In this document: positions 4,390 through 28,690 of the stretch, piece by piece
How the letters are laid out: every line of letters begins with the position of its first letter
Position numbering within the stretch: position 1 is the first letter of the stretch
Source of the DNA: Dicyema japonicum
Lineage: Eukaryota; Animalia; Dicyemida
DNA: 34,100 nt
Assembly: GCA_011109175.1 (NCBI GenBank)
Contig: RDEW01000154.1
Coordinates: 1-34,100, forward strand
Direction: 5' to 3'
The notes under the pieces: model-generated
Seen by the model: the letters and a program-made list of their open reading frames with translations, nothing else
What the model was told of the DNA's origin: nothing
The model's database searches: none
Translations under genes and position numbers: made by a program

Positions 4390-6520
4390 AAAACTGAAAA
4401 ACTTTATTACAAAACCGGATTAGGAGTTAGGTATAGGGGCTTTATCTAATCCGCATTTCAGCCTGGACACTTCAGACGACCCCCATCTCCATCAATAGTA
4501 TGCGTCTTTACGTAGGGATCCATAAATCCTGTTTTCCTCTATTTTCTCCATTGGAGCAAGCATCTTGTTTTTTTCGGTGCTTAAGACGTCGCCTAGTCTT
4601 TCCCCAGGGCTAACTTCATGGCAGATTTTCTAGACTTCTCCAACAGTGATTATTTCCTTTCCTTCTTAGTGGATAGATACCATGTTTCCACCCATACAAT
4701 AGCTTCGGTAGGATTATCCTCGTGAAGAGGAAGATTTCCGTATTGACAGCCAACTTGCGCGTGCAGAAGATCTTCTGACGAGCAGCAAGGCCTCTTGGCC
4801 TTCTTTGAACATACTCATGCTAACGTGGTCATGGCCTGGAGCATTTGCTGTGCATATTCTGATTGCATCCATGACATCCTCGAGGGTGATTCTTATCTCG
4901 TCATTCTTGAGGTCGTTCAGAGAATAGTTACAAAGTTCTTGCGATGCCTCCATCACTTCACTGGGATCAACAACATTGGGTTGACTCCTGGATTTGGTCT
5001 AATTGTCTTTTGAAGATTACCGGAGCTTCTCCTGCAGAGTGCGATCCCCTCCAGGTTGTTCAAGACGATCTTCCTTTCTTCGTTCCTTTGGCCAGTTAAT
5101 TTTTTGTAGATTCTCCAGGGATCTTTGGCGTCTACCTTTTCCGGTTCCTTGTGAGGTAATTCCGGTAATGTTCCCAGTCAATTCGCGAAATGCCATATTT
5201 TATGAACACGTCTTCTGTGACATCTGGAGATAGATGTAGAACCAGTTCCTGCAGTATATGACCACTGCCTATGTCCCACATAGTCCTGGTCTATCCACAT
5301 GGTTTTAAAGTGATGGTGATATAAGGAACACACCAAGCATGTCTCCTCCATGGTGAGAGAAATTGTCGGGCTCATCCGATGTCATGATCTCGAATCCAGC
5401 TCTCTAAGCCAAAATTTTTTGTCTTCGTCCATCCCCATTAGTTTTATAACATCCGTAACTCACGTTCTTGGCGTCTATGTCGTCCACCAGAATTGACATT
5501 TCATTTTTTTCAAAAATTCTATTATCTGTGCAGAACAGTTTCTGATATCCTTTGAATATAAACTCCGATCCTTATCCACGAGCCACAGCAACGCATCTCA
5601 ATGGACATGAGTTCGCATTGTGTGGCCGAGATGATATTCGGGTTCCGTGCTTGAAGGTCCTCATGGCATGGGTGGTTCCCGCACCAACCACAGCGCTTTC
5701 CGCCCAGAATATTTCTATAGAGTTGAATCCTTCCATTTTATAGTGTTGGTATTTTTTACATTTGTCTCGTTGACCACCAGAACGTCAATATTGGTGGCTG
5801 GCAAAAGTAGTGTCAGATCATGATGCCTTTTACTCAGTGATCGGGCATTAACCGACACTATCTTCATACCTTTCTTAAATCCACACTAAGGATTTTTCTC
5901 AGTTCTTTTAGCTTCTAATATCACAGGGGACCCTCCATATCTGGTTCCGTGCTTAGGAGATCCACATTTGACAAAATTTGTTTTTGATCTTGGATCTACC
6001 TTGAATTCGGAGATATCGTGTTTCCCTGCACATCGGAAACACTTATCCTTACCCGATTTGCGTCAGCGAACATCACGAACTTAACATCACGAACTTGGAT
6101 GTAAAACTCATCTATAGCATCTTTTTAATATGATATTCCGTTTTTGAACATATTTCCAATTTTCCGAAACCCACTAAACTTTGTCCTTTTTATTCATCTG
6201 GTCGATAATCGCCTGTAAAACTCATCTATAGCATCTTTTTAATATGATATTCCGTTTTTGAACATATTTCCAATTTTCCGAAACCCACTAAACTTTGTCC
6301 TTCTTATTCATTGGTCGATAATCGCCTGGAAAGATATGATATTTGACCGACTCTCCAGTTGAGAAATTAGATTAGGGAGTCTGGCACCAATTTCTTGTAC
6401 CCCGAACAGCCCTTGGGCCACTTCTACTGCGTTATCATTGTTTTGTCCATCCGGCTCAATAGCATGCAGGTCTGTAGGTAATGTCCCATTCTGATTAATT
6501 GAAACAAACGGTTTCACAAG
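4390..6520 (-). mobile_element. Internally deleted LINE: decayed ORF1 with zinc knuckles, APE endonuclease, RT N-terminus fused to thumb
   Basis: CFRCAGKH near 6040; MKIVSVNARSL...DVLVVNET from 5867; IDWEHY; ITLEDVMDAIRICTANAPGHDHV directly followed by IILPKLLYG and ETWYL-like thumb sequence. Confidence 0.8.
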
Positions 6521-12230: not shown

Positions 12231-12935
12231 GAAACATGAGTAGTTAATTACTGAGTCCAGTGGATATGATCAAGTGGCTGTTACCTCTGACTACTGCCAG
12301 GGATATCCATTGGAAAAGCCACTCGGTTTCCCGACGCTCCCTCGAGGCTTTGTCAATAGACACCCAAGTTTTGTCAATAGACATCAAGTTGTCAAAGACA
12401 CCCCTCGTCTAGACGACCACTGGCTGTACATGGAAACGGTTTAGGAGGCTGCTGTATTTCTTTATTTTTGAGTTTTCATATAAACGTGCGGCCTCTCCCA
12501 CTTTTAAAAATTATTTCAAAATTTATGAAATAATATTTAACTGCTTGAAACCAACTTCGGAAAAGCTCAGATAATTTCGTATTCAGCGAACGTATAGAAT
12601 AAAAGGAGTTATTTGACTACTACAATTAACAAAAACAATCATATAACCTTTAACAATTAAATTTTTTAAACTAACTTTCTTATTTGATATTAATTATTAA
12701 ATTATTTGTTGAGCTAAAATTTTCACAATATTGCGGCTAGTAAATTTTGAAGGAAGTAGATCTTCGGTTCCCATTTAAAACGGCCTCCGATAAATTTTTT
12801 CAGTTTTCTGAAAAGTTCATCAATAAACTTCACGTGATATTTTACAAAGGTCCTCGACATCTTTAGGTATAAAAATCATCTTTTTTAAATTTTATAAAAA
12901 TTGATTTAAGCGGTCCTATTGGTAAGCGGAACAAT

Positions 12936-14159
12936 TTACCAAGTCCTNTTCTCTGGTCGAACTGCAGTGACTGCCCCAAAGCTACCTGCAAAGATGCTCG
13001 CTATTTCAGTCGAGTCAGAGGTTTTAGAACCGTCCGCACGACACAGCGTACGCGCAGATGACTCTTCCCCTCTGCCCAACAGGCGCTTCAGCTGACTCCA
13101 GAAGTCCGGCCATGCGGGGTTCACCCTCTCGCAGGCCCTCCTCCATTTGTCGCTCTGGAAGTCAACGAGCGCCATCCTGATTTCCCTTCTCAAAGAGTTC
13201 ACTTTCTTCTGGTAGTTGATCCGGTTGTATGTGCTCCTCGCTTTGAATCGCAGGTACCTCTTTCTAAGTGTTATCTTACTTAAAATCAGGCCTGCAATCT
13301 GTGCGAAATCTTCACCATGCGGACGTAACCGGAAGTTAGTTCGCATGTATTCCTCGAGGACACCACCCAGGGTGGAATACAATTCTTTTACGTACGCTTC
13401 ACTACAAACTTGCCCTTTGAGAGAAGGGAGTTTTCTATCCATGAACGACTCCAGGTTATCCCAAGTGCAAGAGCCCAAATCATAGCCAATTGGGGCCTGA
13501 GGTCGAACAGGTTCGTGAAGCTCGGTGAGTAGGGGACGGTGATCGCTTCCGATGTCCCTAAGAACACAAGGTACGGAGAGCATACCAATTAATGAAGGGG
13601 AGGCTACGGCCATACCCAAGAAGTCCTCTCCTCCTCGTGTATCTTTGTGATTGGGGTCAGTCGATGTAGTGATTGAGAGTCCAAGATTCCAGGCTAATTC
13701 CCGGAGTGCTGATCCAGCCCTATTATTAACAAAACAGCCAAAATCTGAATACTTAGCATTCAGATCACCAAAAATAACGCAGTGGGGATATATGTCAAAG
13801 GCAGTTTTAATGTGGTCCTTACACAACCACAACTGCTTGGCATACATTGCCCCTATAACAACGCTAAAGCTAGATAATCTAATTTGTAAAAATATTAACT
13901 CGCAATGAGGACAATTTGAAATACCTTGGACGACTGCTGCTAGACTCGTCCTCCAATAGATACTAGTGCCCGAACCTCTATGTGTGTCATTCCACAAGAG
14001 ATGACAACTAGTATAGCCTTTAAAGTCTGCAGCAGCCGTATCCTTACACTTGGTCTCGTTGAGGACCAAGATGTTTACCTCCAGGGAGTCCAGAAGATCC
14101 TCGATGGCCTTCCTTCTTCTCCGGAGGGACCTAACATTAACTGAAATGATGCGTAACAT
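12936..14159 (-). CDS. LINE ORF2, 5' part: APE endonuclease and linker, truncated before the RT
   Basis: About 408 open codons with ISVNVRSL, LVLNETK, IFGDLNAK, IGSDHRPL and PDFWSQLKRLL; one n near the broken end. Confidence 0.9.
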   Translation of the reverse strand: MLRIISVNVRSLRRRRKAIEDLLDSLEVNILVLNETKCKDTAAADFKGYTSCHLLWNDTHRGSGTSIYWRTSLAAVVQGISNCPHCELIFLQIRLSSFSVVIGAMYAKQLWLCKDHIKTAFDIYPHCVIFGDLNAKYSDFGCFVNNRAGSALRELAWNLGLSITTSTDPNHKDTRGGEDFLGMAVASPSLIGMLSVPCVLRDIGSDHRPLLTELHEPVRPQAPIGYDLGSCTWDNLESFMDRKLPSLKGQVCSEAYVKELYSTLGGVLEEYMRTNFRLRPHGEDFAQIAGLILSKITLRKRYLRFKARSTYNRINYQKKVNSLRREIRMALVDFQSDKWRRACERVNPAWPDFWSQLKRLLGRGEESSARTLCRADGSKTSDSTEIASIFAGSFGAVTAVRPEXRTW

Positions 14160-14918
14160 CACTTCGGCGCACTTACCTTCCTATCACAGAGCGCAATGTC
14201 CCTAAGCGCATTAGGGAACTTTGAACCTGTGCTGCTACAGTATCGACTTACCACGCGGTGGACAGCGCTTACATCACTGACCACTCCAGAGGAGGGTGCC
14301 TGCCTTCTCCCCTGTGGTACCTTCTCCGTCGCCTCCTGATACAGGGGGCACTTGGTATGGCTCGCCATGTGTCCTTCCTGGCCACAATTCACGCATTTTA
14401 GAGACCTGACTCTGGATTGACAGGCCTTCCGTGAATTTGGACCCCCGCAATTTAGGCACTTCTCTTTATAAGTGCAGCGGGAGCGAATCCCTGGCATCTG
14501 TAGCACTGGATTGCTACCGGTCGCTCTCGGGCCACACCAAATCTAAAGTAACCTATCTTTAACTTCTCAAGGCAGATCCTCTCTGCTTCTGCTCCGGACC
14601 TTATCCAGACCTTGAGAGTCCGTAGCCTCTGACTCCCACTTTTGAAGCGCTCGATCTTGTGCGCCGTGGGGTAGTCCTTTTTGATGAACTCTAGTACATC
14701 CTTATCAACAAAGTCCAGAGGGACCCCAAAGACTAGTACAATCGAGTCCGTTACCTTGGGGATGACCCGAGACATGTTATGTGCCCCGGGCCCAAAAGGT
14801 ACCTTCTTATTCACCTCACCTTCAAAAGCTGAGGCGTCCACGTCGTTTCTGAATCCCACCAACAAGTGGGATTCTCCACGTCTGACGATCCTTCCTTTGG
14901 CATAGGTAGCCAGAGTGG
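14159..14918 (-). pseudogene. LINE ORF1 (gag-like, three C-terminal zinc knuckles), 5'-truncated and frameshifted
   Basis: CYRCQG, CLNCGGP..C and CVNCGQEGH....CP; frameshift in the first knuckle near 14500; stop overlaps the ORF2 ATG. Confidence 0.85.
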
Positions 14919-15066
14919 TTGTAGGAAAAAAAGTCAAGTGGAAAAAAAGTCAAGTCCGTAAGCGGAAAAAAGTCAAGTTGTCTTTTTTTAGTTTATATCG
15001 CATTTTTGTGATACTACTAGCATCTTTTAATTTTTAAAAATTTTTTCAATATTTGACTTTTTTTCC
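14916..15066. repeat. TIR-like end with GGAAAAAAAGTCAA motif array
   Basis: Three motif copies at 14923-14977 and an inverted copy at 15053-15066; 14971-15051 is the exact reverse complement of 18047-18127. Confidence 0.8.
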
Positions 15067-15415
15067 ATTTTTGAAAATTTTTTCCGTTTATAAATTAAGA
15101 TTTCTATTCATGATCGTTTCATTTTAAAGTAAGCGAGTTTAGAATAACAAATTATTTAAATAGTTAATTCTGGCTAATGTTAATGCATTAAAATGTCCCG
15201 CCACAACTAAAACTACACGTGGTGGAAATAAATTCTAAAAATAAAACAGATTTTTTCTACTTTTAAAATTTTTTAAAATGTTATAAACATATGATTTTTA
15301 TTTAACGTGAATCAAAAGAATATTTAATATTCCATGCAATTGCTTTTAGGGCTTCTCCTACTGTTTTTTTCCGTCCTGGCGATCCAGACATATATTTAAA
15401 AGTTTTTTTTGTCCA

Positions 15416-15613
15416 TCAATCGTTTTTTTGATTTGTTCTTGTTGAAATTCTTTTTCCAAAGGAATCCTGGTCAATAATAGTTTTCTTCATTTTTTCTTCT
15501 TTTTGGAATGACGATATAATATTCCATATCGATGGATGACGATATCCCGTCAAATTGTATAATTTATTGTTCCACCCTTCACAATAGTTNTTGTCTCTTA
15601 TTTTTTGCGGCAA
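15416..15613 (-). mobile_element. MULE transposase C-terminal fragment
   Basis: NYCEGWNNKLYNLTGYRHPSIWNIISSFQKEE fits the RTNN..EGW.N...HP.IW..I..LQKE motif. Confidence 0.7.
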
Positions 15614-15664
15614 GCATAATATTTAAAATACGCCTAATTATAACCTTAAAATCCGTATATTGAT

Positions 15665-15847
15665 TAAGTCAAAAAGATTAAACCAAAGCGAAAAAAGTCA
15701 AAGTCAAAAAGATTAAACCAAAGCGAAAAAAGTTAAGTCAATTTTATTATTACCTTGAAATTCTTAAATTGATTTAGTCAAAGCGATTATACCAAAGCGG
15801 AAAAAAAGTCAAGTCCGTAATTTCGTTAACGGACTTGACTTTTTTTC
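15665..15847. repeat. Further GCGGAAAAAAAGTCAA motif array ending in a 19-bp perfect inverted repeat
   Basis: Arms 15800-15818 and 15829-15847 with a 10-nt spacer, immediately before the N gap. Confidence 0.8.
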
Positions 15848-16062
15848 NNNNNNNNNNNNNNNNNNNNNNNNNNNNNNNNNNNNNNNNNNNNNNNNNNNNN
15901 NNNNNNNNNNNNNNNNNNNNNNNNNNNNNNNNNNNNNNNNNNNNNNNNNNNNNNNNNNNNNNNNNNNNNNNNNNNNNNNNNNNNNNNNNNNNNNNNNNNN
16001 NNNNNNNNNNNNNNNNNNNNNNNNNNNNNNNNNNNNNNNNNNNNNNNNNNNNNNNNNNNNNN
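15848..16062. other. Assembly gap
   Basis: Run of N. Confidence 1.
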
Positions 16063-16796
16063 TAGTTTTGTCTACCAAGAATGTCTAGGTGTTTGTTTCG
16101 GTGTAGGCGGTTACTGACATGCATGTTTCTTAACCACCTCCTTTGCTGGCAATTAAAGGTTTTCAATGGGGGAAAGGTGAGTTAATATTTGACAAGGAAT
16201 AATTAATCTATGAAGATTGGAAACGTAATCTCTTCAAGGCTAGGAGATCCTCGGGAGCGGAGTTGGTTAGTCTTGGAATTGCTATCATTCCCAGTAATCC
16301 CGATTGTTTCTTGGAAACTGGTGCTTGATTTTTTTCTTTTTCCTGATAAAAAATTAATCTGTTATTGACTCAAGGACATGAAGATCATCATTTGGCAGGT
16401 GTTCCATATTTTTACGATATAACCACAGCCTATAAAAATTTTCCATTTTTAGCAAAAAAAGCTTTCTTCTTTCCATGTTCTCCAGTAACATCTTTCCGAC
16501 TATAAAGAGGCTGAGTTCATTTAGTTCCAATCTTTACTTTCACGCTGTTATGAGGTGAGTTCTTGAGGTTTTTACCAATCATCTGACGAACTTATCCGCT
16601 TCTTCATAAACAGGGTGCTCAAAATCCAAAGATCCAACGTCACATATGGAAAATTGCCTTATGTCTAAAAATCGATAGTTTTGACAATTGGTTGTCCCCA
16701 AAATTGTCTAACGGTTGGGGACCACAGCTGTGTACAAACATACGAAGACACAAAATTAGTATTATATGTAGATAGTGTCTCCTTGACATGCTTAGT

Positions 16797-17834
16797 CTAG
16801 CATTTCCGTGAGTCCTCAAACATCAATTTCGACATTGAACTTACATAGTCTTGTANGCTGATTGATCTCAAACCAAGTTCATTCAACGCGTCTTGCTTTT
16901 GCGCGTTAAAATATGAAATCAGATTAAAAATTGGACGCACGTGGGCGACTGACGACTTGAGTTTAACCACTCCTATCTTCGGCACCTTTAGCCGAACTAG
17001 TGTAGTTAGTCCTCCGTATACCTGTTCATTCTTCTTTTCTTTCGGCACGTGCGCTCTTGATTGATTCGAGCCTGCAAAATGCTTTTTAGGGCACTTTGCG
17101 GTTTCTGGACCCGAATCACGCACGTTCTGCGGTTTGGCAGAAACCGCAGACTTCCTCTTTCTCCCTACTGTAGTCCAACCTACAGTAATCGGGAGACGGT
17201 CCTCTTGTCTTCCTTCGTTGAGGGCAGGCACAGCCTGTTGGACCGCTGGCTGTGTGACGGATTCAGCCCTGCCCTCGGTTCTCGGTCCTTGATTCCTTTC
17301 AAGAGGCTGAGTCTTGCCCTCAACCTCCATCCTCCTCGTCCCATGCACAGCTTGTTCAACCGCTAGCTGTGCTGGGATGTTTTCCTCAGTCCTTGGATCC
17401 ATTACAGGAGGCTGAGTCTTGCTCTCAACCTCCATCCTCCTCGGTGCAGGCACAGCTTGAACAACCGCTTGCTGTGTGGGGATGTCCGCTGCAGTGTGGA
17501 AAGCAGCCCTGCCATCGATCCCCATATTCACTCTGAAGGACAGAAGGATCGAGTCGCGAACGACCCTCCTGAGCTTCTCGATTCCTCGGACTCCTCTAAA
17601 ATACAGTCCAATATTGGGCTTATTTGTGAAGAGTCCTTGTACCACGTGGGCCGCTGTGTCGCAGACCACACGTGAGATGTCCTGATAATCGTCCAAACTT
17701 CTTACGGAACGTGTTGTGCTACTAACTTTAACTGCCGCCCGTTTAGATCCTTTTGTGCTAACTTTTTGAACCATTTTCGTCCTTGGAACTTTTGCTCCAG
17801 TTGATTTTCTAGCAGTTTGTTTTGTTCGTGCCAT
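16797..17834 (-). CDS. Hypothetical protein with an N-terminal histone H3 tail mimic and no histone fold
   Basis: 345 open codons from ATG starting MARTKQTARKSTGAKVPRTKMVQK; internal 35-aa repeats; GRKRK basic cluster; one n at 16856; candidate 24-nt intron at 17682-17705. Confidence 0.65.
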   Translation of the reverse strand: MARTKQTARKSTGAKVPRTKMVQKVSTKGSKRAAVKVSSTTRSVRSLDDYQDISRVVCDTAAHVVQGLFTNKPNIGLYFRGVRGIEKLRRVVRDSILLSFRVNMGIDGRAAFHTAADIPTQQAVVQAVPAPRRMEVESKTQPPVMDPRTEENIPAQLAVEQAVHGTRRMEVEGKTQPLERNQGPRTEGRAESVTQPAVQQAVPALNEGRQEDRLPITVGWTTVGRKRKSAVSAKPQNVRDSGPETAKCPKKHFAGSNQSRAHVPKEKKNEQVYGGLTTLVRLKVPKIGVVKLKSSVAHVRPIFNLISYFNAQKQDALNELGLRSISXQDYVSSMSKLMFEDSRKC

Positions 17835-17933
17835 TATTTATCGATGAATGAATGAAAATTATCGATGGAATGGAAGGAAAAATTTTTATTAGGCAAAAAC
17901 AAATAGTTAGAAATTAGGGAAGAACTAAACTAA

Positions 17934-18192
17934 GTGGAGTGCGGAAAAAAAGTCAAGCGGAAAAAAGGTCAAGCGGAAAAAAAGTCAAGTCCGTAAGGGG
18001 AAAAAAAGTCAAGCGGAAAAAAAGGATCTGCCTTGAGAAGTTAAAGTATTGAAAAAATTTTTAAAAATTAAAAGATGCTAGTAGTATCACAAAAATGCGA
18101 TATAAACTAAAAAAAGACAACTTGACTTTTTTTCCGCTTGACTTTTTTTCCGCTTGACCTTTTTTCCACTTGACTTTTTTTCCGCACTCCAC
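17934..18192. mobile_element. MITE-like unit or transposon end made of inverted 16-bp motif arrays
   Basis: GTGGAGTGCGGAAAAAAAGTCAAG at the left end and its reverse complement at the right end; 4-5 motif copies per side; no target-site duplication seen. Confidence 0.65.
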
Positions 18193-18479
18193 TCTGGCTA
18201 CCTATGCGAAAGGAAGGATCGTCAGACGAGGAGAATCCCACTTGTTGGTGGGATTCAGAAATGACGTGGACGCCTCAGCTTTTGAAGCTGAGGTGAATAA
18301 GAAGGTTCCTTTTGGGCCCGGGGCACATAACATGTCTCGGGTCATCCCCAAGGTACACGACTCGATTGTACTAGTCTTCGGAGTCCCTCTGGACTTTGTT
18401 GATGAGGATGTACTCGAGTACATCAAAAAGGACTACCCCACGGCGCACAAGATCGAGCGCTTCAAGAGTGGGAGTCAGA
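18189..18479 (+). mobile_element. Second copy of the LINE ORF1, running into the gap
   Basis: About 95% identical (14 mismatches in about 290 nt by hand count) to the reverse complement of about 14628-14918. Confidence 0.9.
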
Positions 18480-19066
18480 NNNNNNNNNNNNNNNNNNNNN
18501 NNNNNNNNNNNNNNNNNNNNNNNNNNNNNNNNNNNNNNNNNNNNNNNNNNNNNNNNNNNNNNNNNNNNNNNNNNNNNNNNNNNNNNNNNNNNNNNNNNNN
18601 NNNNNNNNNNNNNNNNNNNNNNNNNNNNNNNNNNNNNNNNNNNNNNNNNNNNNNNNNNNNNNNNNNNNNNNNNNNNNNNNNNNNNNNNNNNNNNNNNNNN
18701 NNNNNNNNNNNNNNNNNNNNNNNNNNNNNNNNNNNNNNNNNNNNNNNNNNNNNNNNNNNNNNNNNNNNNNNNNNNNNNNNNNNNNNNNNNNNNNNNNNNN
18801 NNNNNNNNNNNNNNNNNNNNNNNNNNNNNNNNNNNNNNNNNNNNNNNNNNNNNNNNNNNNNNNNNNNNNNNNNNNNNNNNNNNNNNNNNNNNNNNNNNNN
18901 NNNNNNNNNNNNNNNNNNNNNNNNNNNNNNNNNNNNNNNNNNNNNNNNNNNNNNNNNNNNNNNNNNNNNNNNNNNNNNNNNNNNNNNNNNNNNNNNNNNN
19001 NNNNNNNNNNNNNNNNNNNNNNNNNNNNNNNNNNNNNNNNNNNNNNNNNNNNNNNNNNNNNNNNNN
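18480..19066. other. Assembly gap
   Basis: Run of N. Confidence 1.
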
Positions 19067-19554
19067 ATCTGAAGAAGGAAGAGAAATTTTCAACCAATTG
19101 ACCATATAGCACCACATAGCGCCTCACGGACGTATGCATATGAAACTTCCAAAGTTCTAGATTGTATCTGAGGTTATAAAATATTAATGAGGACCATAAA
19201 GACCGTGATGATCCGAAGTAGTGTAGAAACTATCAGGATTATCCAAGTGCGGTATTTATTCTTAGAATTCGGCACATCAAAACACACCAAATTTTATTTC
19301 CATGACAACGACTATGGAATCGACTGAGGCGTTTCAGTTCAACTGATGCCTTGGTCAAAAATCTCACGTCTCAAACTTAAAAGTATTCATATTTCCCCCA
19401 GAATGCCAAATCTAATCTCACTTTCTCCAGAGACTTCCGAGAACGTTCTAGCCGTCTATTTCCCTTGTTTTCGAAAGGTAATATATTTAAATAGCTATGG
19501 CCTTCAATCTTTTCCTGTTATTATTTAGTATGGTATATGCTATTTTATTTTAAT

Positions 19555-19630
19555 TTTTTTAATTAACAAAAGACCACGGTAAAACAAAACTAATTATCAC
19601 GTGATCCCGATGCATCTAACAGAGACCTCA
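19555..19630 (-). mobile_element. Very short LINE 3' end
   Basis: tgcatcgggatcacgtgataattagttttgttttaccgtggtctttt on the minus strand, the same terminus as 3150-3207. Confidence 0.75.
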
Positions 19631-20320
19631 CTCTACAATTACTCAATAAACGAACTTAATTATGCTGAGAATAAAACTACAATCGAGGAGGTCAAAAAGC
19701 AATTAAAGGCATGTAAGGCCAATGCTCCGGGCTTCGACCACGTCAACGTGCAAATGCTAACGATCGTAGGCCACACTACTCGTCTTGCAATGTCTATTCA
19801 ACGCAAGTATAAATTATCGATGTATCCCAACATGGTGGAAGAAGTTTACAGTCAGAATGATTCTCAAACCTGTAAAGTCGGAGAGGGAACCTCATAATTT
19901 TAGACCGATCAGCCTTATATGCTCAATATCCAAGATTATTGACTATTCTACTTAACATCAATCCAATTTTATCCGCATTACATTTAACCAACAATCAGCT
20001 ACTCTTGTCCAACATGGGGCACTAAAATATCGTATACGAATAAAAAAATCAATTCCTTCCAAGAAACAGTCACGAGGGCCTTACAAAGACTCTCATTGTT
20101 GATAATCCAACTTCGTTGAAAGAACATGTAAGAAGGACGGTGGCCTATTTGAAAACTCCAATTTTCCAAAAAGTAGATCATCCATACAGGAAGTGTATCG
20201 GCTCTTGGGAGAAACACTGAGAAAGAATAAGACGGCTGATTAAGGATACCGGAATCACCTGATTGCCAATATTCCATTATATTTTGCCGTTGATTCTTGG
20301 TTTTTTAATAAATAAATAAT
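19630..20320 (+). mobile_element. LINE remnant: RT N-terminus joined to thumb and 3' end, RT core missing
   Basis: TTIEEVKKQLKACKANAPGFDHV, FRPISL..SISKII, then YSCPTWG and ERIRRLIKDTGIT*, followed by an aataaataaa tail. Confidence 0.7.
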
Positions 20321-21106
20321 GGCCGACATCAAATAATAATGTCGAACTACCTTTTTAATGAAAATAACTTCAGATGATATCGGATCTTACTGTCGTCGGT
20401 TAGAATCCATAGGATTGACTTTCAGTGAAGGCTCATTCTCGTCAAATAGATCCCACCCGTAAGGGGACTCCTCCTTCTGGAACGATAAAGTTGTTGAAAG
20501 GGATCTTCCATTTTTTTGTGAACAAATCAACTCATGAAAATTATCATGAAAAATCTTCCGCCTAAGAATGAAGTGATGTCAGCGACGGAAGGAGCTGTAT
20601 TGAAAATAGAAGAGGAAGGACCTACTTCTACACTTCTCTTCAAAAGCTGAAGCCTGTAATAGACTATTGGAGGATGGATTCGATCAGCACAAACAGATTT
20701 AATCCCTTCCTTGGATTAATTAGTCATGATAGTACTGTGCTTAACAAATATGAAAATCTTAAGGTTAATATATAAAATTTCAATATTAGGTTCTTTTAAG
20801 CGCAAAGCTAGTGACATAGCTTGATTGAACTAAACGTCTTAATATTTTCTAGAAAAATGACTCTATCATAAACTATTTTGCAGGGTTAATGAAATGCCTG
20901 CTAAAAACGCTTAATCCAATCTTATGAAGTGGAATCCAGCCTTGGAAAAAATAGAGATCTTAGATACTGAATCTGAGATGAAATGACATCTCAGAAGGTT
21001 CCTTTATTATTAATTTGCTTTTAAAAGAAGAGGAGCACAGAAAAAAGTGAATTTTAAATCATTCGAAAAACATTTTAATAATTCAAAACGTTAAAATGGC
21101 TTATTT

Positions 21107-27037: not shown

Positions 27038-28690
27038 TTATAAGTTAGATTCCACTTGACCTCCCTTCGCCGATAAAGTAATCGAGGCAATAACCATTTG
27101 AATTTTATCTACAATAAAAATGACAAAACTTATGGTTCTTTCAATTTTTGGAAATCCGTGGAGATATAATAAAAAGATATAAATTGGAACAGCAGTGAAC
27201 TTTATCACAGTTCCCAATACTGCAAAATCAGTAAACATGTAACCTGATTCGAACGGGGACACAGTTATGGAAGCTATAACAAGACACGATACTAAAATTA
27301 TGAATATTATTGGAATTGCTAGAGGCACCAAAATGAGTTCTAAATTACTTTAATGGGTCTGTCTACGGCCGGTCTGACCTTCCTGAGGTACAACAGTGCA
27401 ACGGCAACGGAAATGGTGGAAGCGTAGTTCATTATCCCCCAGTAATTCAATAGCAGCACAATGTTATCTGAAATCGTGTAAAGCATCGTGAGAAGGCCCT
27501 AAGGTGAAATCAGTATCATTACACATGCTAAGACAGCAATCAAGGGGGTTTTGAACTTAATGCTGACCGTGCTTACCACTTCAGGCATATGGTTGTGTCG
27601 GGCAGCAACGGAAAATAACCTAATTTTGTGAAATTTGTTGTCAAACCGAGAATATCCGTAAAATTGACTATTTAAGGCTCCAAACGTAGAGAGGGAGACC
27701 CCAGCTGACAGGAGATATTTGTAAATGACATTGACTTTGCCTCCCAAACTCTAAATTCATGGATTTGCCCAATACTAAGGCTATCGCTTCGGATTGGATT
27801 ATCTCGTCAAAAGTGAGAACCGCGTAATATGAAATTACGGTAAAAACGTAAATTACTGTGCACAAAGAGATGGAAATAATAATCGTGATTGGCATATCTC
27901 TGATTTTATAAAAAAAGGCAAACTTCTTCAAATTCTTCATTTCTTTTGAAACCGTGTTTAAATGTTGCCTAAAGTAAGAATAAACAGAACCATCCGTGGT
28001 AAGCAAACAGGCCACCATAGTGGGCTAAAGCGATCTGTCCAATGTTACTTGTGGTACCTTTAAATCCCATTTTGAGGGTGTCGAAGTGACCTCATGATAG
28101 AAAATTCCAAGTTACCAGTTATTAGGAAATAAAATCCAGTGCTGATTAAAGATAGAAGAACGAGGATTTTTATGACATTGCAAACATTCTGGACGATAAG
28201 TGAGACCCGGGTGCTAAGGCAATTGATTGCTGTAACGGCAACTGAAAAAAAATTATGAGCATTTACTCGTGCAAAGGTTGGCCAACAAAATCACAATTAC
28301 TGATTTGAAAGAACATGAGGGATAGATTGGTTTGAGCAAATAAACGGAGAAAGTAATGGCTATAATAGCCGAAATTGCTGGCCTGATGACGATAAGTTCT
28401 ATCCATATTCTCAGAAAGGCTGCAAAAGGACCAAAAGCTTTCATAGCGTAAACGTAATCTCCACCAGAACTAGGGATCATAGCCCCTTATTCAGCGTAGC
28501 AGAAGGCTCCCATCATGGAAATCAATCCGGAGTTGACCCAGATAAGTATTGAAAGACCAATACTGCTGGTCTGTTTCAGCATGCTCGATGAGGTTATAAA
28601 AATTCCAGATCCAATCATTGACCCTACAATTATGGTTATAGAATGGAGTATTTTCAGATGTCGATTCTCACTTACTGTATTTACTGGCAT
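27038..28690 (-). pseudogene. LAT-family (SLC7 light chain) amino-acid transporter with 10 tiny introns and two apparent lesions
   Basis: GSMIGSGIF, CYAE*GAMIPSSGGDY, KPIYPSC (heavy-chain disulfide Cys), GLFAYHGW, STFGALNS and RPIKVPL. Removing 10 introns (237 nt) leaves 1416 nt, or 472 codons. In-frame TAA at 28487-28489; non-AG acceptor at 27329. Confidence 0.85.

Follow-up and report, generated by a model that had tools for sequence, protein, structure and literature searches.

How does an open reading frame (ORF) that encodes no histone fold come to begin with a histone H3 tail? The question is raised by a stretch of 34,100 nucleotides from Dicyema japonicum (contig RDEW01000154.1; the whole 34.1-kb stretch is called the window below), in which a first-pass annotation had read such an ORF as a candidate histone mimic, an interpretation that our analysis supports in part. 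The ORF is present as described: it occupies 345 codons of the minus strand (17834 to 16797), and its translated product begins with Met followed by ARTKQTARKSTGAKVPR. We find that it is a mosaic, composed of the start of an H3 gene, a second histone-like start, an orphan body resembling part of a long interspersed nuclear element (LINE), and an unrelated end. We consider it probable that the ORF corresponds to the 5' portion of a gag-like ORF1 in a LINE family with an apurinic/apyrimidinic endonuclease (APE), and that histone genes provide this family with a start codon, and probably with a promoter too, the leaders being nested one behind the other.

That the ORF has no histone fold had been claimed from the sequence and is borne out. 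A Pfam search of the ORF found no domain, and tblastn with the complete H3 protein against the whole window returned the tail alone. A histone-fold exon spliced to the tail from further downstream, which would have made this an H3 variant, was sought in the 34 kb by that tblastn search and none was present, so that a spliced H3 variant is ruled out. A single-sequence AlphaFold2 model of the ORF (pLDDT 42) contains two helices (residues 47–70 and 82–103), is otherwise disordered and likewise shows no histone fold; we judged it too poor a basis for fold searches.

The composition of the ORF became apparent from Logan contigs of four public runs, of which three sample one organism (organism A) and the fourth a relative of it (organism B); we compared these contigs with positions 14000–18043. 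Run X1 contains 72–73% of the 31-mers sampled from the stretch, and the contigs match the window only piecewise. Codon 18 begins at 17780, and there 38 X1 contigs together with contigs of X5 and X6 exit the window and read K-Q-L-S-A-K-S-A-R/L-K, which is genuine H3. It follows that ...STGAKVPRKQL... is the sequence of the organism's own H3, to which the tail of the ORF, ARTKQTARKSTG..., is identical over residues 1–17. Identity to canonical H3 over residues 1–12 had been noted before and holds in the translation. K23 and K27, which had been placed in the H3 register, match by chance, as both sit in a second leader that starts at an internal Met20. A mimic of about 27 residues had been proposed; the H3 part is only 17 residues long, and residues 20–45 belong to the beginning of a second, H2B-like gene. 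The tail thus ends in a chimeric join, which the first-pass annotation had named as evidence against its own reading: the contigs part from the window exactly at codon 18, and K18 of H3 is lost at the junction with the second leader.

The H3 similarity also extends upstream of the coding sequence. An organism B contig shows no differences over the 63 nt of 17780–17842, the 8 nt upstream of the ATG included, and the organism B H3 contigs share at least 17835–17866, diverging at 17861 or 17866, 27–32 nt upstream of the ATG. A TATA-like AT-rich stretch lies ~50 nt upstream of the H3 ATG, and the promoter would extend within 17835–17932. The leader has a summed depth of ~430,000 and a GC content at third codon positions (GC3) of 0.11. 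Because the H3-gene piece has a 5' flank, host-like codon usage and contigs diverging exactly at codon 18, we conclude that the tail is present by descent.

Not all H3-like sequences in these runs look alike. Within 17750–17779, the X1 contigs with an H3 continuation (38 in all) mostly have Leu (CTC) at the codon for which X5 and X6 have Arg26 (CGC). Given Leu in place of Arg26, many of the H3-like 5' fragments of organism A may be incomplete copies that have diverged, and not functional H3 genes.

With codons 20–45 a second very high-copy gene begins, and 4 nt of its 5' untranslated region (UTR) are retained. Fifteen X1 contigs, and contigs of X5 and X6, match 17699–17774, exit at 17699, where codon 45 begins, and then read KKKKRSQNYH, a basic patch; X3 contigs provide genuine 5'UTRs ahead of the ATG at 17774, and one of them shares the GAAA. 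This leader is in frame both with the H3 leader upstream and with the body downstream, its depth is ~520,000 and its GC3 is 0.23. The basic patch followed by an aromatic residue resembles the sequence that leads into the H2B fold, and by this resemblance the second gene is most likely H2B. Atlas feature matches of residues 20–46 fall mostly into PF00125 clusters, which we treat as a weak lead only. A sequence search of the PDB with the 26-residue leader gave no match, a result that is uninformative for a variable tail.

The body that follows (codons 46–291, ~246 codons) has a different character. Its GC3 of 0.52 agrees with that of the neighboring LINE ORF1 and ORF2 (0.50–0.57) and not with the low values of the two leaders; outside its transposon ORFs the window has 30–36% GC. 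Depth in X1 is 38,000–75,000 in the body vs ~257 in the adjacent low-copy DNA (16063–16786), about 150–300 times higher; over 16063–16834 the low-copy depth is ~165–257. At each variable site 17–21 distinct contigs are present. Depth climbs in the 3' direction, from 38,600 at 17510–17644 to 75,700 at 16970–17104 and ~100,000 in the ORF1 core, as would be expected from 5'-truncated LINE copies. Of the eight sites listed at which the window copy differs from the family majority, four are synonymous, which is weak evidence of constraint. The 35-aa repeats described in the first-pass annotation are real (105-nt period, 17291–17380 and 17396–17485, 84% identical), and the GRKRK cluster is found at residues 225–229.

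We detected no relatives of the body in protein databases. An exhaustive HMMER search of 1.84 billion representatives gave 0 matches, a word-indexed search of 5.8 billion proteins, restricted to candidates of 190–604 aa, returned a match to the H3 tail and no relatives of the body, and two metagenome scans found no match. Atlas feature matches for the body score 0.5–0.55 and fall mostly into CCHC or LINE-gag clusters, again a weak lead only. The best reading of the body, as the N-terminal region of a LINE ORF1, comes from what follows it in other copies.

Contigs of the family part from the window at 16959, where codon 291 has its last base, and re-enter it at 14916 after 15 nt, at the beginning of an ORF1 core (three plus one X1 contigs and two X3 contigs); four further loose ends at 16959 show the first 9 nt of that core. 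As the linker is 15 nt long and four of its five variants are free of stops, opening into TLATYAKG..., the frame is continuous from the body into the ORF1 core. The core has no in-frame ATG in its first 47 codons (54 if counted from the TTG chosen by the ORF finder), and an in-frame stop lies just upstream of it in both of the copies in the window that are flanked by a foldback element. It is nevertheless under coding constraint: the two copies differ by 8 synonymous vs 4 non-synonymous changes, and by 4 vs 1 before the first in-frame ATG. The core is therefore coding sequence that lacks its own start codon, and the start must come from upstream. Features of an APE-type LINE are present, namely an endonuclease ORF2, a CCHC gag-like ORF1 preceding it, and high copy number with fewer 5' parts; in the left copy the stop of ORF1 and the start of ORF2 overlap. 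Of the earlier description of an H3 tail on a non-histone protein, the tail thus stands as genuine, and the carrier turns out to be no host gene: it is a broken copy of a multi-copy LINE ORF1, of which it forms the 5' part.

Together, the linker and the first 17 nt of the core make up a hairpin whose stem has 8 bp and whose loop has 9 nt (GCATAGGT / ACCTATGC; 14900–14916 in the window, with the linker missing at 16944–16958). In the coordinates of intact copies, three independent breakpoints (14916, 18193 and the end of the body at 16959) fall within the 15 nt of the linker, and the hairpin may be a fragile site or a hotspot of processing or recombination. An Rfam search of 12500–20500 found no ribozyme, whether of the hepatitis delta virus (HDV)-like or another type, and inspection by eye found no HDV-like pairing at the 5' end of the core; the hairpin site has no match to any Rfam family.

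The window copy itself is dead, because it is cut after codon 291, a frameshift disrupts the neighboring ORF1 core and ORF2 is cut short. Family contigs exit at 16959, and 20 X1 contigs exit at 16947 in the other direction, so that the last 54 codons of the ORF are foreign to the family. The left core is ~2 kb from the body, with an N gap (15848–16062) between them. Its frameshift, evident because the zinc-knuckle part is in another frame than 14452–14937, lies within the first zinc knuckle, and the ORF2 copy ends near 12936, before any reverse-transcriptase part. The contig with the body (16063–18479) is joined to that with the core by scaffolding alone, and their linkage in the window may be a scaffolding effect of intact copies elsewhere. 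The window copy is, in other words, an ordinary dead fragment, and the point of interest is the family behind it. Coordinates of all parts are collected in the table.

Table. Parts of the ORF and neighboring transposon features in the window
Feature	Coordinates	Strand	Basis
H3 5' flank and 5'UTR	17835..17932	-	sequence reading; partly common to organism B H3 contigs
H3 leader: ATG, codons 1–17 (ARTKQTARKSTGAKVPR), first base of Lys18	17780..17834	-	translation, contigs
Second histone leader: junction base 17779, 5'UTR GAAA (17775–17778), ATG and 25 codons (MVQKVSTKGSKRAAVKVSSTTRSVR), 1 nt	17699..17779	-	contigs
Orphan body, codons 46–291: two predicted helices, 35-aa repeats, GRKRK	16959..17698	-	contigs, composition
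Two 105-nt (35-aa) tandem units in the body	17291..17485	-	repeat family D3, 84% identity
Last 54 codons, foreign to the family: 11–12 nt filler, repeat 16835–16947, low-copy DNA with the stop	16797..16958	-	contigs
LINE ORF1 core, left copy, begins TLATYAKGRIVRRGESHLLVGF...	14452..14916	-	joint contigs, two-copy comparison
ORF1 zinc-knuckle part	14159..14506	-	Pfam zf-CCHC_6 1.9e-7, zf-CCHC
ORF2, APE-type endonuclease	12936..14162	-	Pfam Exo_endo_phos 5.4e-12, Exo_endo_phos_2 2.6e-8
Second, inverted ORF1 core copy, entering N gap	18194..18479	+	inverted repeats I1/I2; tblastn 94% amino-acid identity
Foldback (MITE-like) unit, 261 bp, 57-nt terminal inverted repeats of 16-nt motif CTTGACTTTTTTTCCG	17933..18193	.	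inverted repeat I3 98%; families D1, D2

How might such a family arise? In intact relatives, the body would continue in frame into the core, with its RNA-recognition-motif (RRM)-like domain and CCHC knuckles, and the endonuclease ORF2 would follow, as it does in the left copy of the window. Since the ORF1 core lacks a start codon, the element is most likely expressed via the ATG of a histone gene: it would land in frame within the first codons of such a gene and use the gene's ATG and probably its promoter. The histone leader would then be transcribed and copied along with the element, so that a later landing in another histone gene, after slight 5' truncation, would stack a second leader and yield the order H3, H2B-like, ORF1. 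Both leader joins are in frame, for which the chance is ~1 in 9. The H3 tail, on this account, would be a by-product of start-codon borrowing.

Several points weigh against this explanation. The runs carry no record of their library type, and depth, which may partly reflect expression, is therefore no clean measure of copy number. The H3/H2B and H2B/body joins rest on the assembly itself, with no bridging contig among those listed, and the contig that carries them is bounded by N gaps (15848–16062 and 18480–19066). The joint contigs that connect body and core have short sides of 20–26 nt. The core occurs twice in the window behind a foldback element instead of the body, with the same break base (14916 and 18193), from which body and core could be separable modules. 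The identification of H2B leans on the resemblance of 10 translated residues of a loose end to H2B sequences. No reverse-transcriptase domain of the LINE was found within the window, where the left copy ends early and the right copy enters an N gap. Finally, the window contains no complete copy of the element, a single leader-bearing copy and no histone gene, so that targeting of histone genes is not visible here.

Start-codon borrowing from histone genes has partial precedents. LINEs in multicopy RNA genes (rDNA, small nuclear RNA (snRNA) and spliced-leader genes) are textbook users of host transcription, and the R2 RNAs of several lineages retain target sequence from upstream. Like the target-specific elements (R2 and R1 in 28S rDNA; SLACS, CZAR and NeSL in spliced-leader genes; Utopia in U2 snRNA genes), the family described here has no evident 5' promoter of its own, carries upstream host-gene sequence and is partnered with a tandemly repeated, highly expressed gene family. 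It differs from them in that the partner is a protein-coding histone gene transcribed by Pol II, that a translational fusion supplies the ATG, and that the leaders are stacked, H3 ahead of H2B-like. It also differs from R2, NeSL and Utopia, which have a restriction-like endonuclease, in being an APE-type element with a CCHC gag-like ORF1.

Type I LINE ORF1 proteins, a class said to go back to Khazina and Weichenrieder in 2009, reportedly comprise gag proteins of the I, Jockey and CR1-like elements with RRM-like domains and CCHC knuckles. The ORF1 of our family resembles them in its CCHC knuckles and in the overlapping start of an APE-endonuclease ORF2 behind them, and departs from them in an N-terminal extension of 290 residues without detectable relatives, headed by histone tails, and in a core without its own ATG. 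There is a likeness, too, to 5' transduction by L1, to ORF0-exon fusions and to capture by Pack-MULEs and Helitrons, in all of which host fragments at the 5' end of an element can be translated as chimeras. The pieces here, in contrast, are the starts of histone genes, are in frame, and would be a regular source of start codons rather than an accident. Full-text literature searches found no histone-targeting LINE and no H3-tailed ORF1.

If true, this would be a new strategy of LINE expression in which promoter and start codon are borrowed from histone genes. Retrotransposition would be tied to S phase, and a modifiable H3 or H2B tail would be displayed on the transposon ribonucleoprotein (RNP). 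The locus also holds a caution for annotation: even an ORF that is intact and opens with a perfect H3 tail can be a piece of a dead transposon.

It is tempting to speculate that the tails are more than a by-product. Short histone mimics are known from influenza NS1 (ARSK), G9a (ARKT) and SARS-CoV-2 ORF8 (ARKS), and the ORF shares with them an H3-like ARTK/ARKS context on a non-histone protein. Those mimics are convergent motifs of 4–6 residues, often internal or C-terminal, whereas the present tail has 17 residues, stands at the true N-terminus and was copied from an H3 gene together with its 5' flank. Functional mimicry, in which H3 and H2B tails on the ORF1 protein are kept for a use, would be compatible with start-codon borrowing, and we think it unlikely. 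The uses might be import by histone karyopherins or chaperones, tethering of the RNP to chromatin, or the soaking up or recruitment of writers and readers of K4, K9, S10 and K14. Histone tails are known nuclear-import signals, the 17 residues are those of the organism's own H3, Met removal would leave a free A1 and expose the K4, K9, S10 and K14 contexts, and both leader junctions are in frame (again the ~1-in-9 chance). On the other hand, leaders with host codon usage look like recent, passive captures, K18 has been lost at the junction and the window copy is dead. The specific proposal that a LINE family acquired authentic H3 and H2B tails on its gag by in-frame landing and puts them to use, in S-phase-coupled expression, import, chromatin docking or as a silencing decoy, seems to us rather improbable.

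The joins could also be an artifact, the product of a short-read assembler that fused H3, second leader and body out of high-copy repeats. The contig concerned is 2.4 kb long, lies between two N gaps and consists almost entirely of high-copy sequence, and many contigs branch at every boundary. However, the pieces that meet at the junctions have no sequence in common by which a k-mer assembler could be misled, the two joins keep the frame and X1 contains most of the sampled 31-mers, as given above, and we regard an artifact as quite unlikely.

We see very little chance that the H3-tail gene is instead a passenger of a DNA transposon, captured in the manner of a Pack-MULE (a Mutator-like element, MULE, carrying host fragments) between terminal inverted repeats at 14916–15054 and 18044–18192. 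Inverted repeats with a 16-nt subterminal motif do occur at these places, 14945–15889 is very high copy, and a 65-codon ORF at 15416–15613 on the minus strand (CEGWNNKL...HPSIW) is vaguely reminiscent of the C-termini of MULE-type transposases. Pfam, however, finds nothing in that ORF, and other copies join the body directly to ORF1. The inverted repeat, moreover, runs at least 287 nt past the proposed ends (14916 and 18192) into LINE ORF1, up to the N gap, and the flanks are therefore mirror images and not a target duplication. In run X5 the LINE and histone parts are present, yet depth is zero in every bin of 15080–16969, the MULE-like repeat included, which is odd for same-species DNA. Scarcely credible, finally, is a host gene, whether for a chromatin protein specific to the lineage or for an H3 variant that lacks the fold and is spliced to exons further downstream. 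Although the 345-codon ORF is intact and its body has no homologues that would mark it as transposon, the sequence is multi-copy with many diverged variants, its 3' end is foreign, no histone-fold exon lies in the 34 kb, transposon sequence flanks and interrupts it, and other copies join it in frame to ORF1.

Some features of the body and its surroundings deserve mention in their own right. Some family members (X1 and X3 contigs) skip 186 nt (62 codons) in frame, from 17277 to 17464; the skip spans the 35-aa repeats, and repeat number therefore differs between copies. The ~113-nt repeat at 16835–16947, within the foreign end of the ORF, has the highest depth of the stretch (~524,000 in X1, bin 16835–16969), similar to that of the histone leaders, and has no Rfam match.

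The foldback unit, which is of the type of miniature inverted-repeat transposable elements (MITEs), sits between the H3 flank and the inverted ORF1 core and has a depth of 140,000–490,000. It consists of tandem CTTGACTTTTTTTCCG motifs around an 89-nt core, and a related unit at 14917–15067 adjoins the left ORF1 core. The large inverted repeat has arms at 14628–15054 and 18044–18479 (94–99% identity) that reach well into ORF1 coding sequence. At the junction of foldback and core, 7–9 nt are far more divergent (CCGCACTCC vs CCTACAACC) than the flanks, which have that 94–99% identity.

Beyond the left core, 15080–15847 has a depth of 96,000–326,000 in X1 and contains 35-nt tandem units (15666–15735) and a palindrome at ~15780–15847. 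Fragments resembling reverse transcriptase, decayed and of uncertain affiliation, lie at 19601–19955. A decayed fragment of a different LINE endonuclease, 29–39% identical to ORF2 (12936–14162) and interrupted by stop codons, is found on the minus strand at 5287–5867. Searches with the ORF2 endonuclease and with the amino-acid-permease exon described next gave no matches. The only clear host-gene signal of the window is an ORF at 27668–28018, also on the minus strand, which matches an amino-acid permease (PF13520, 1.9e-6) and is probably an exon of a host transporter.

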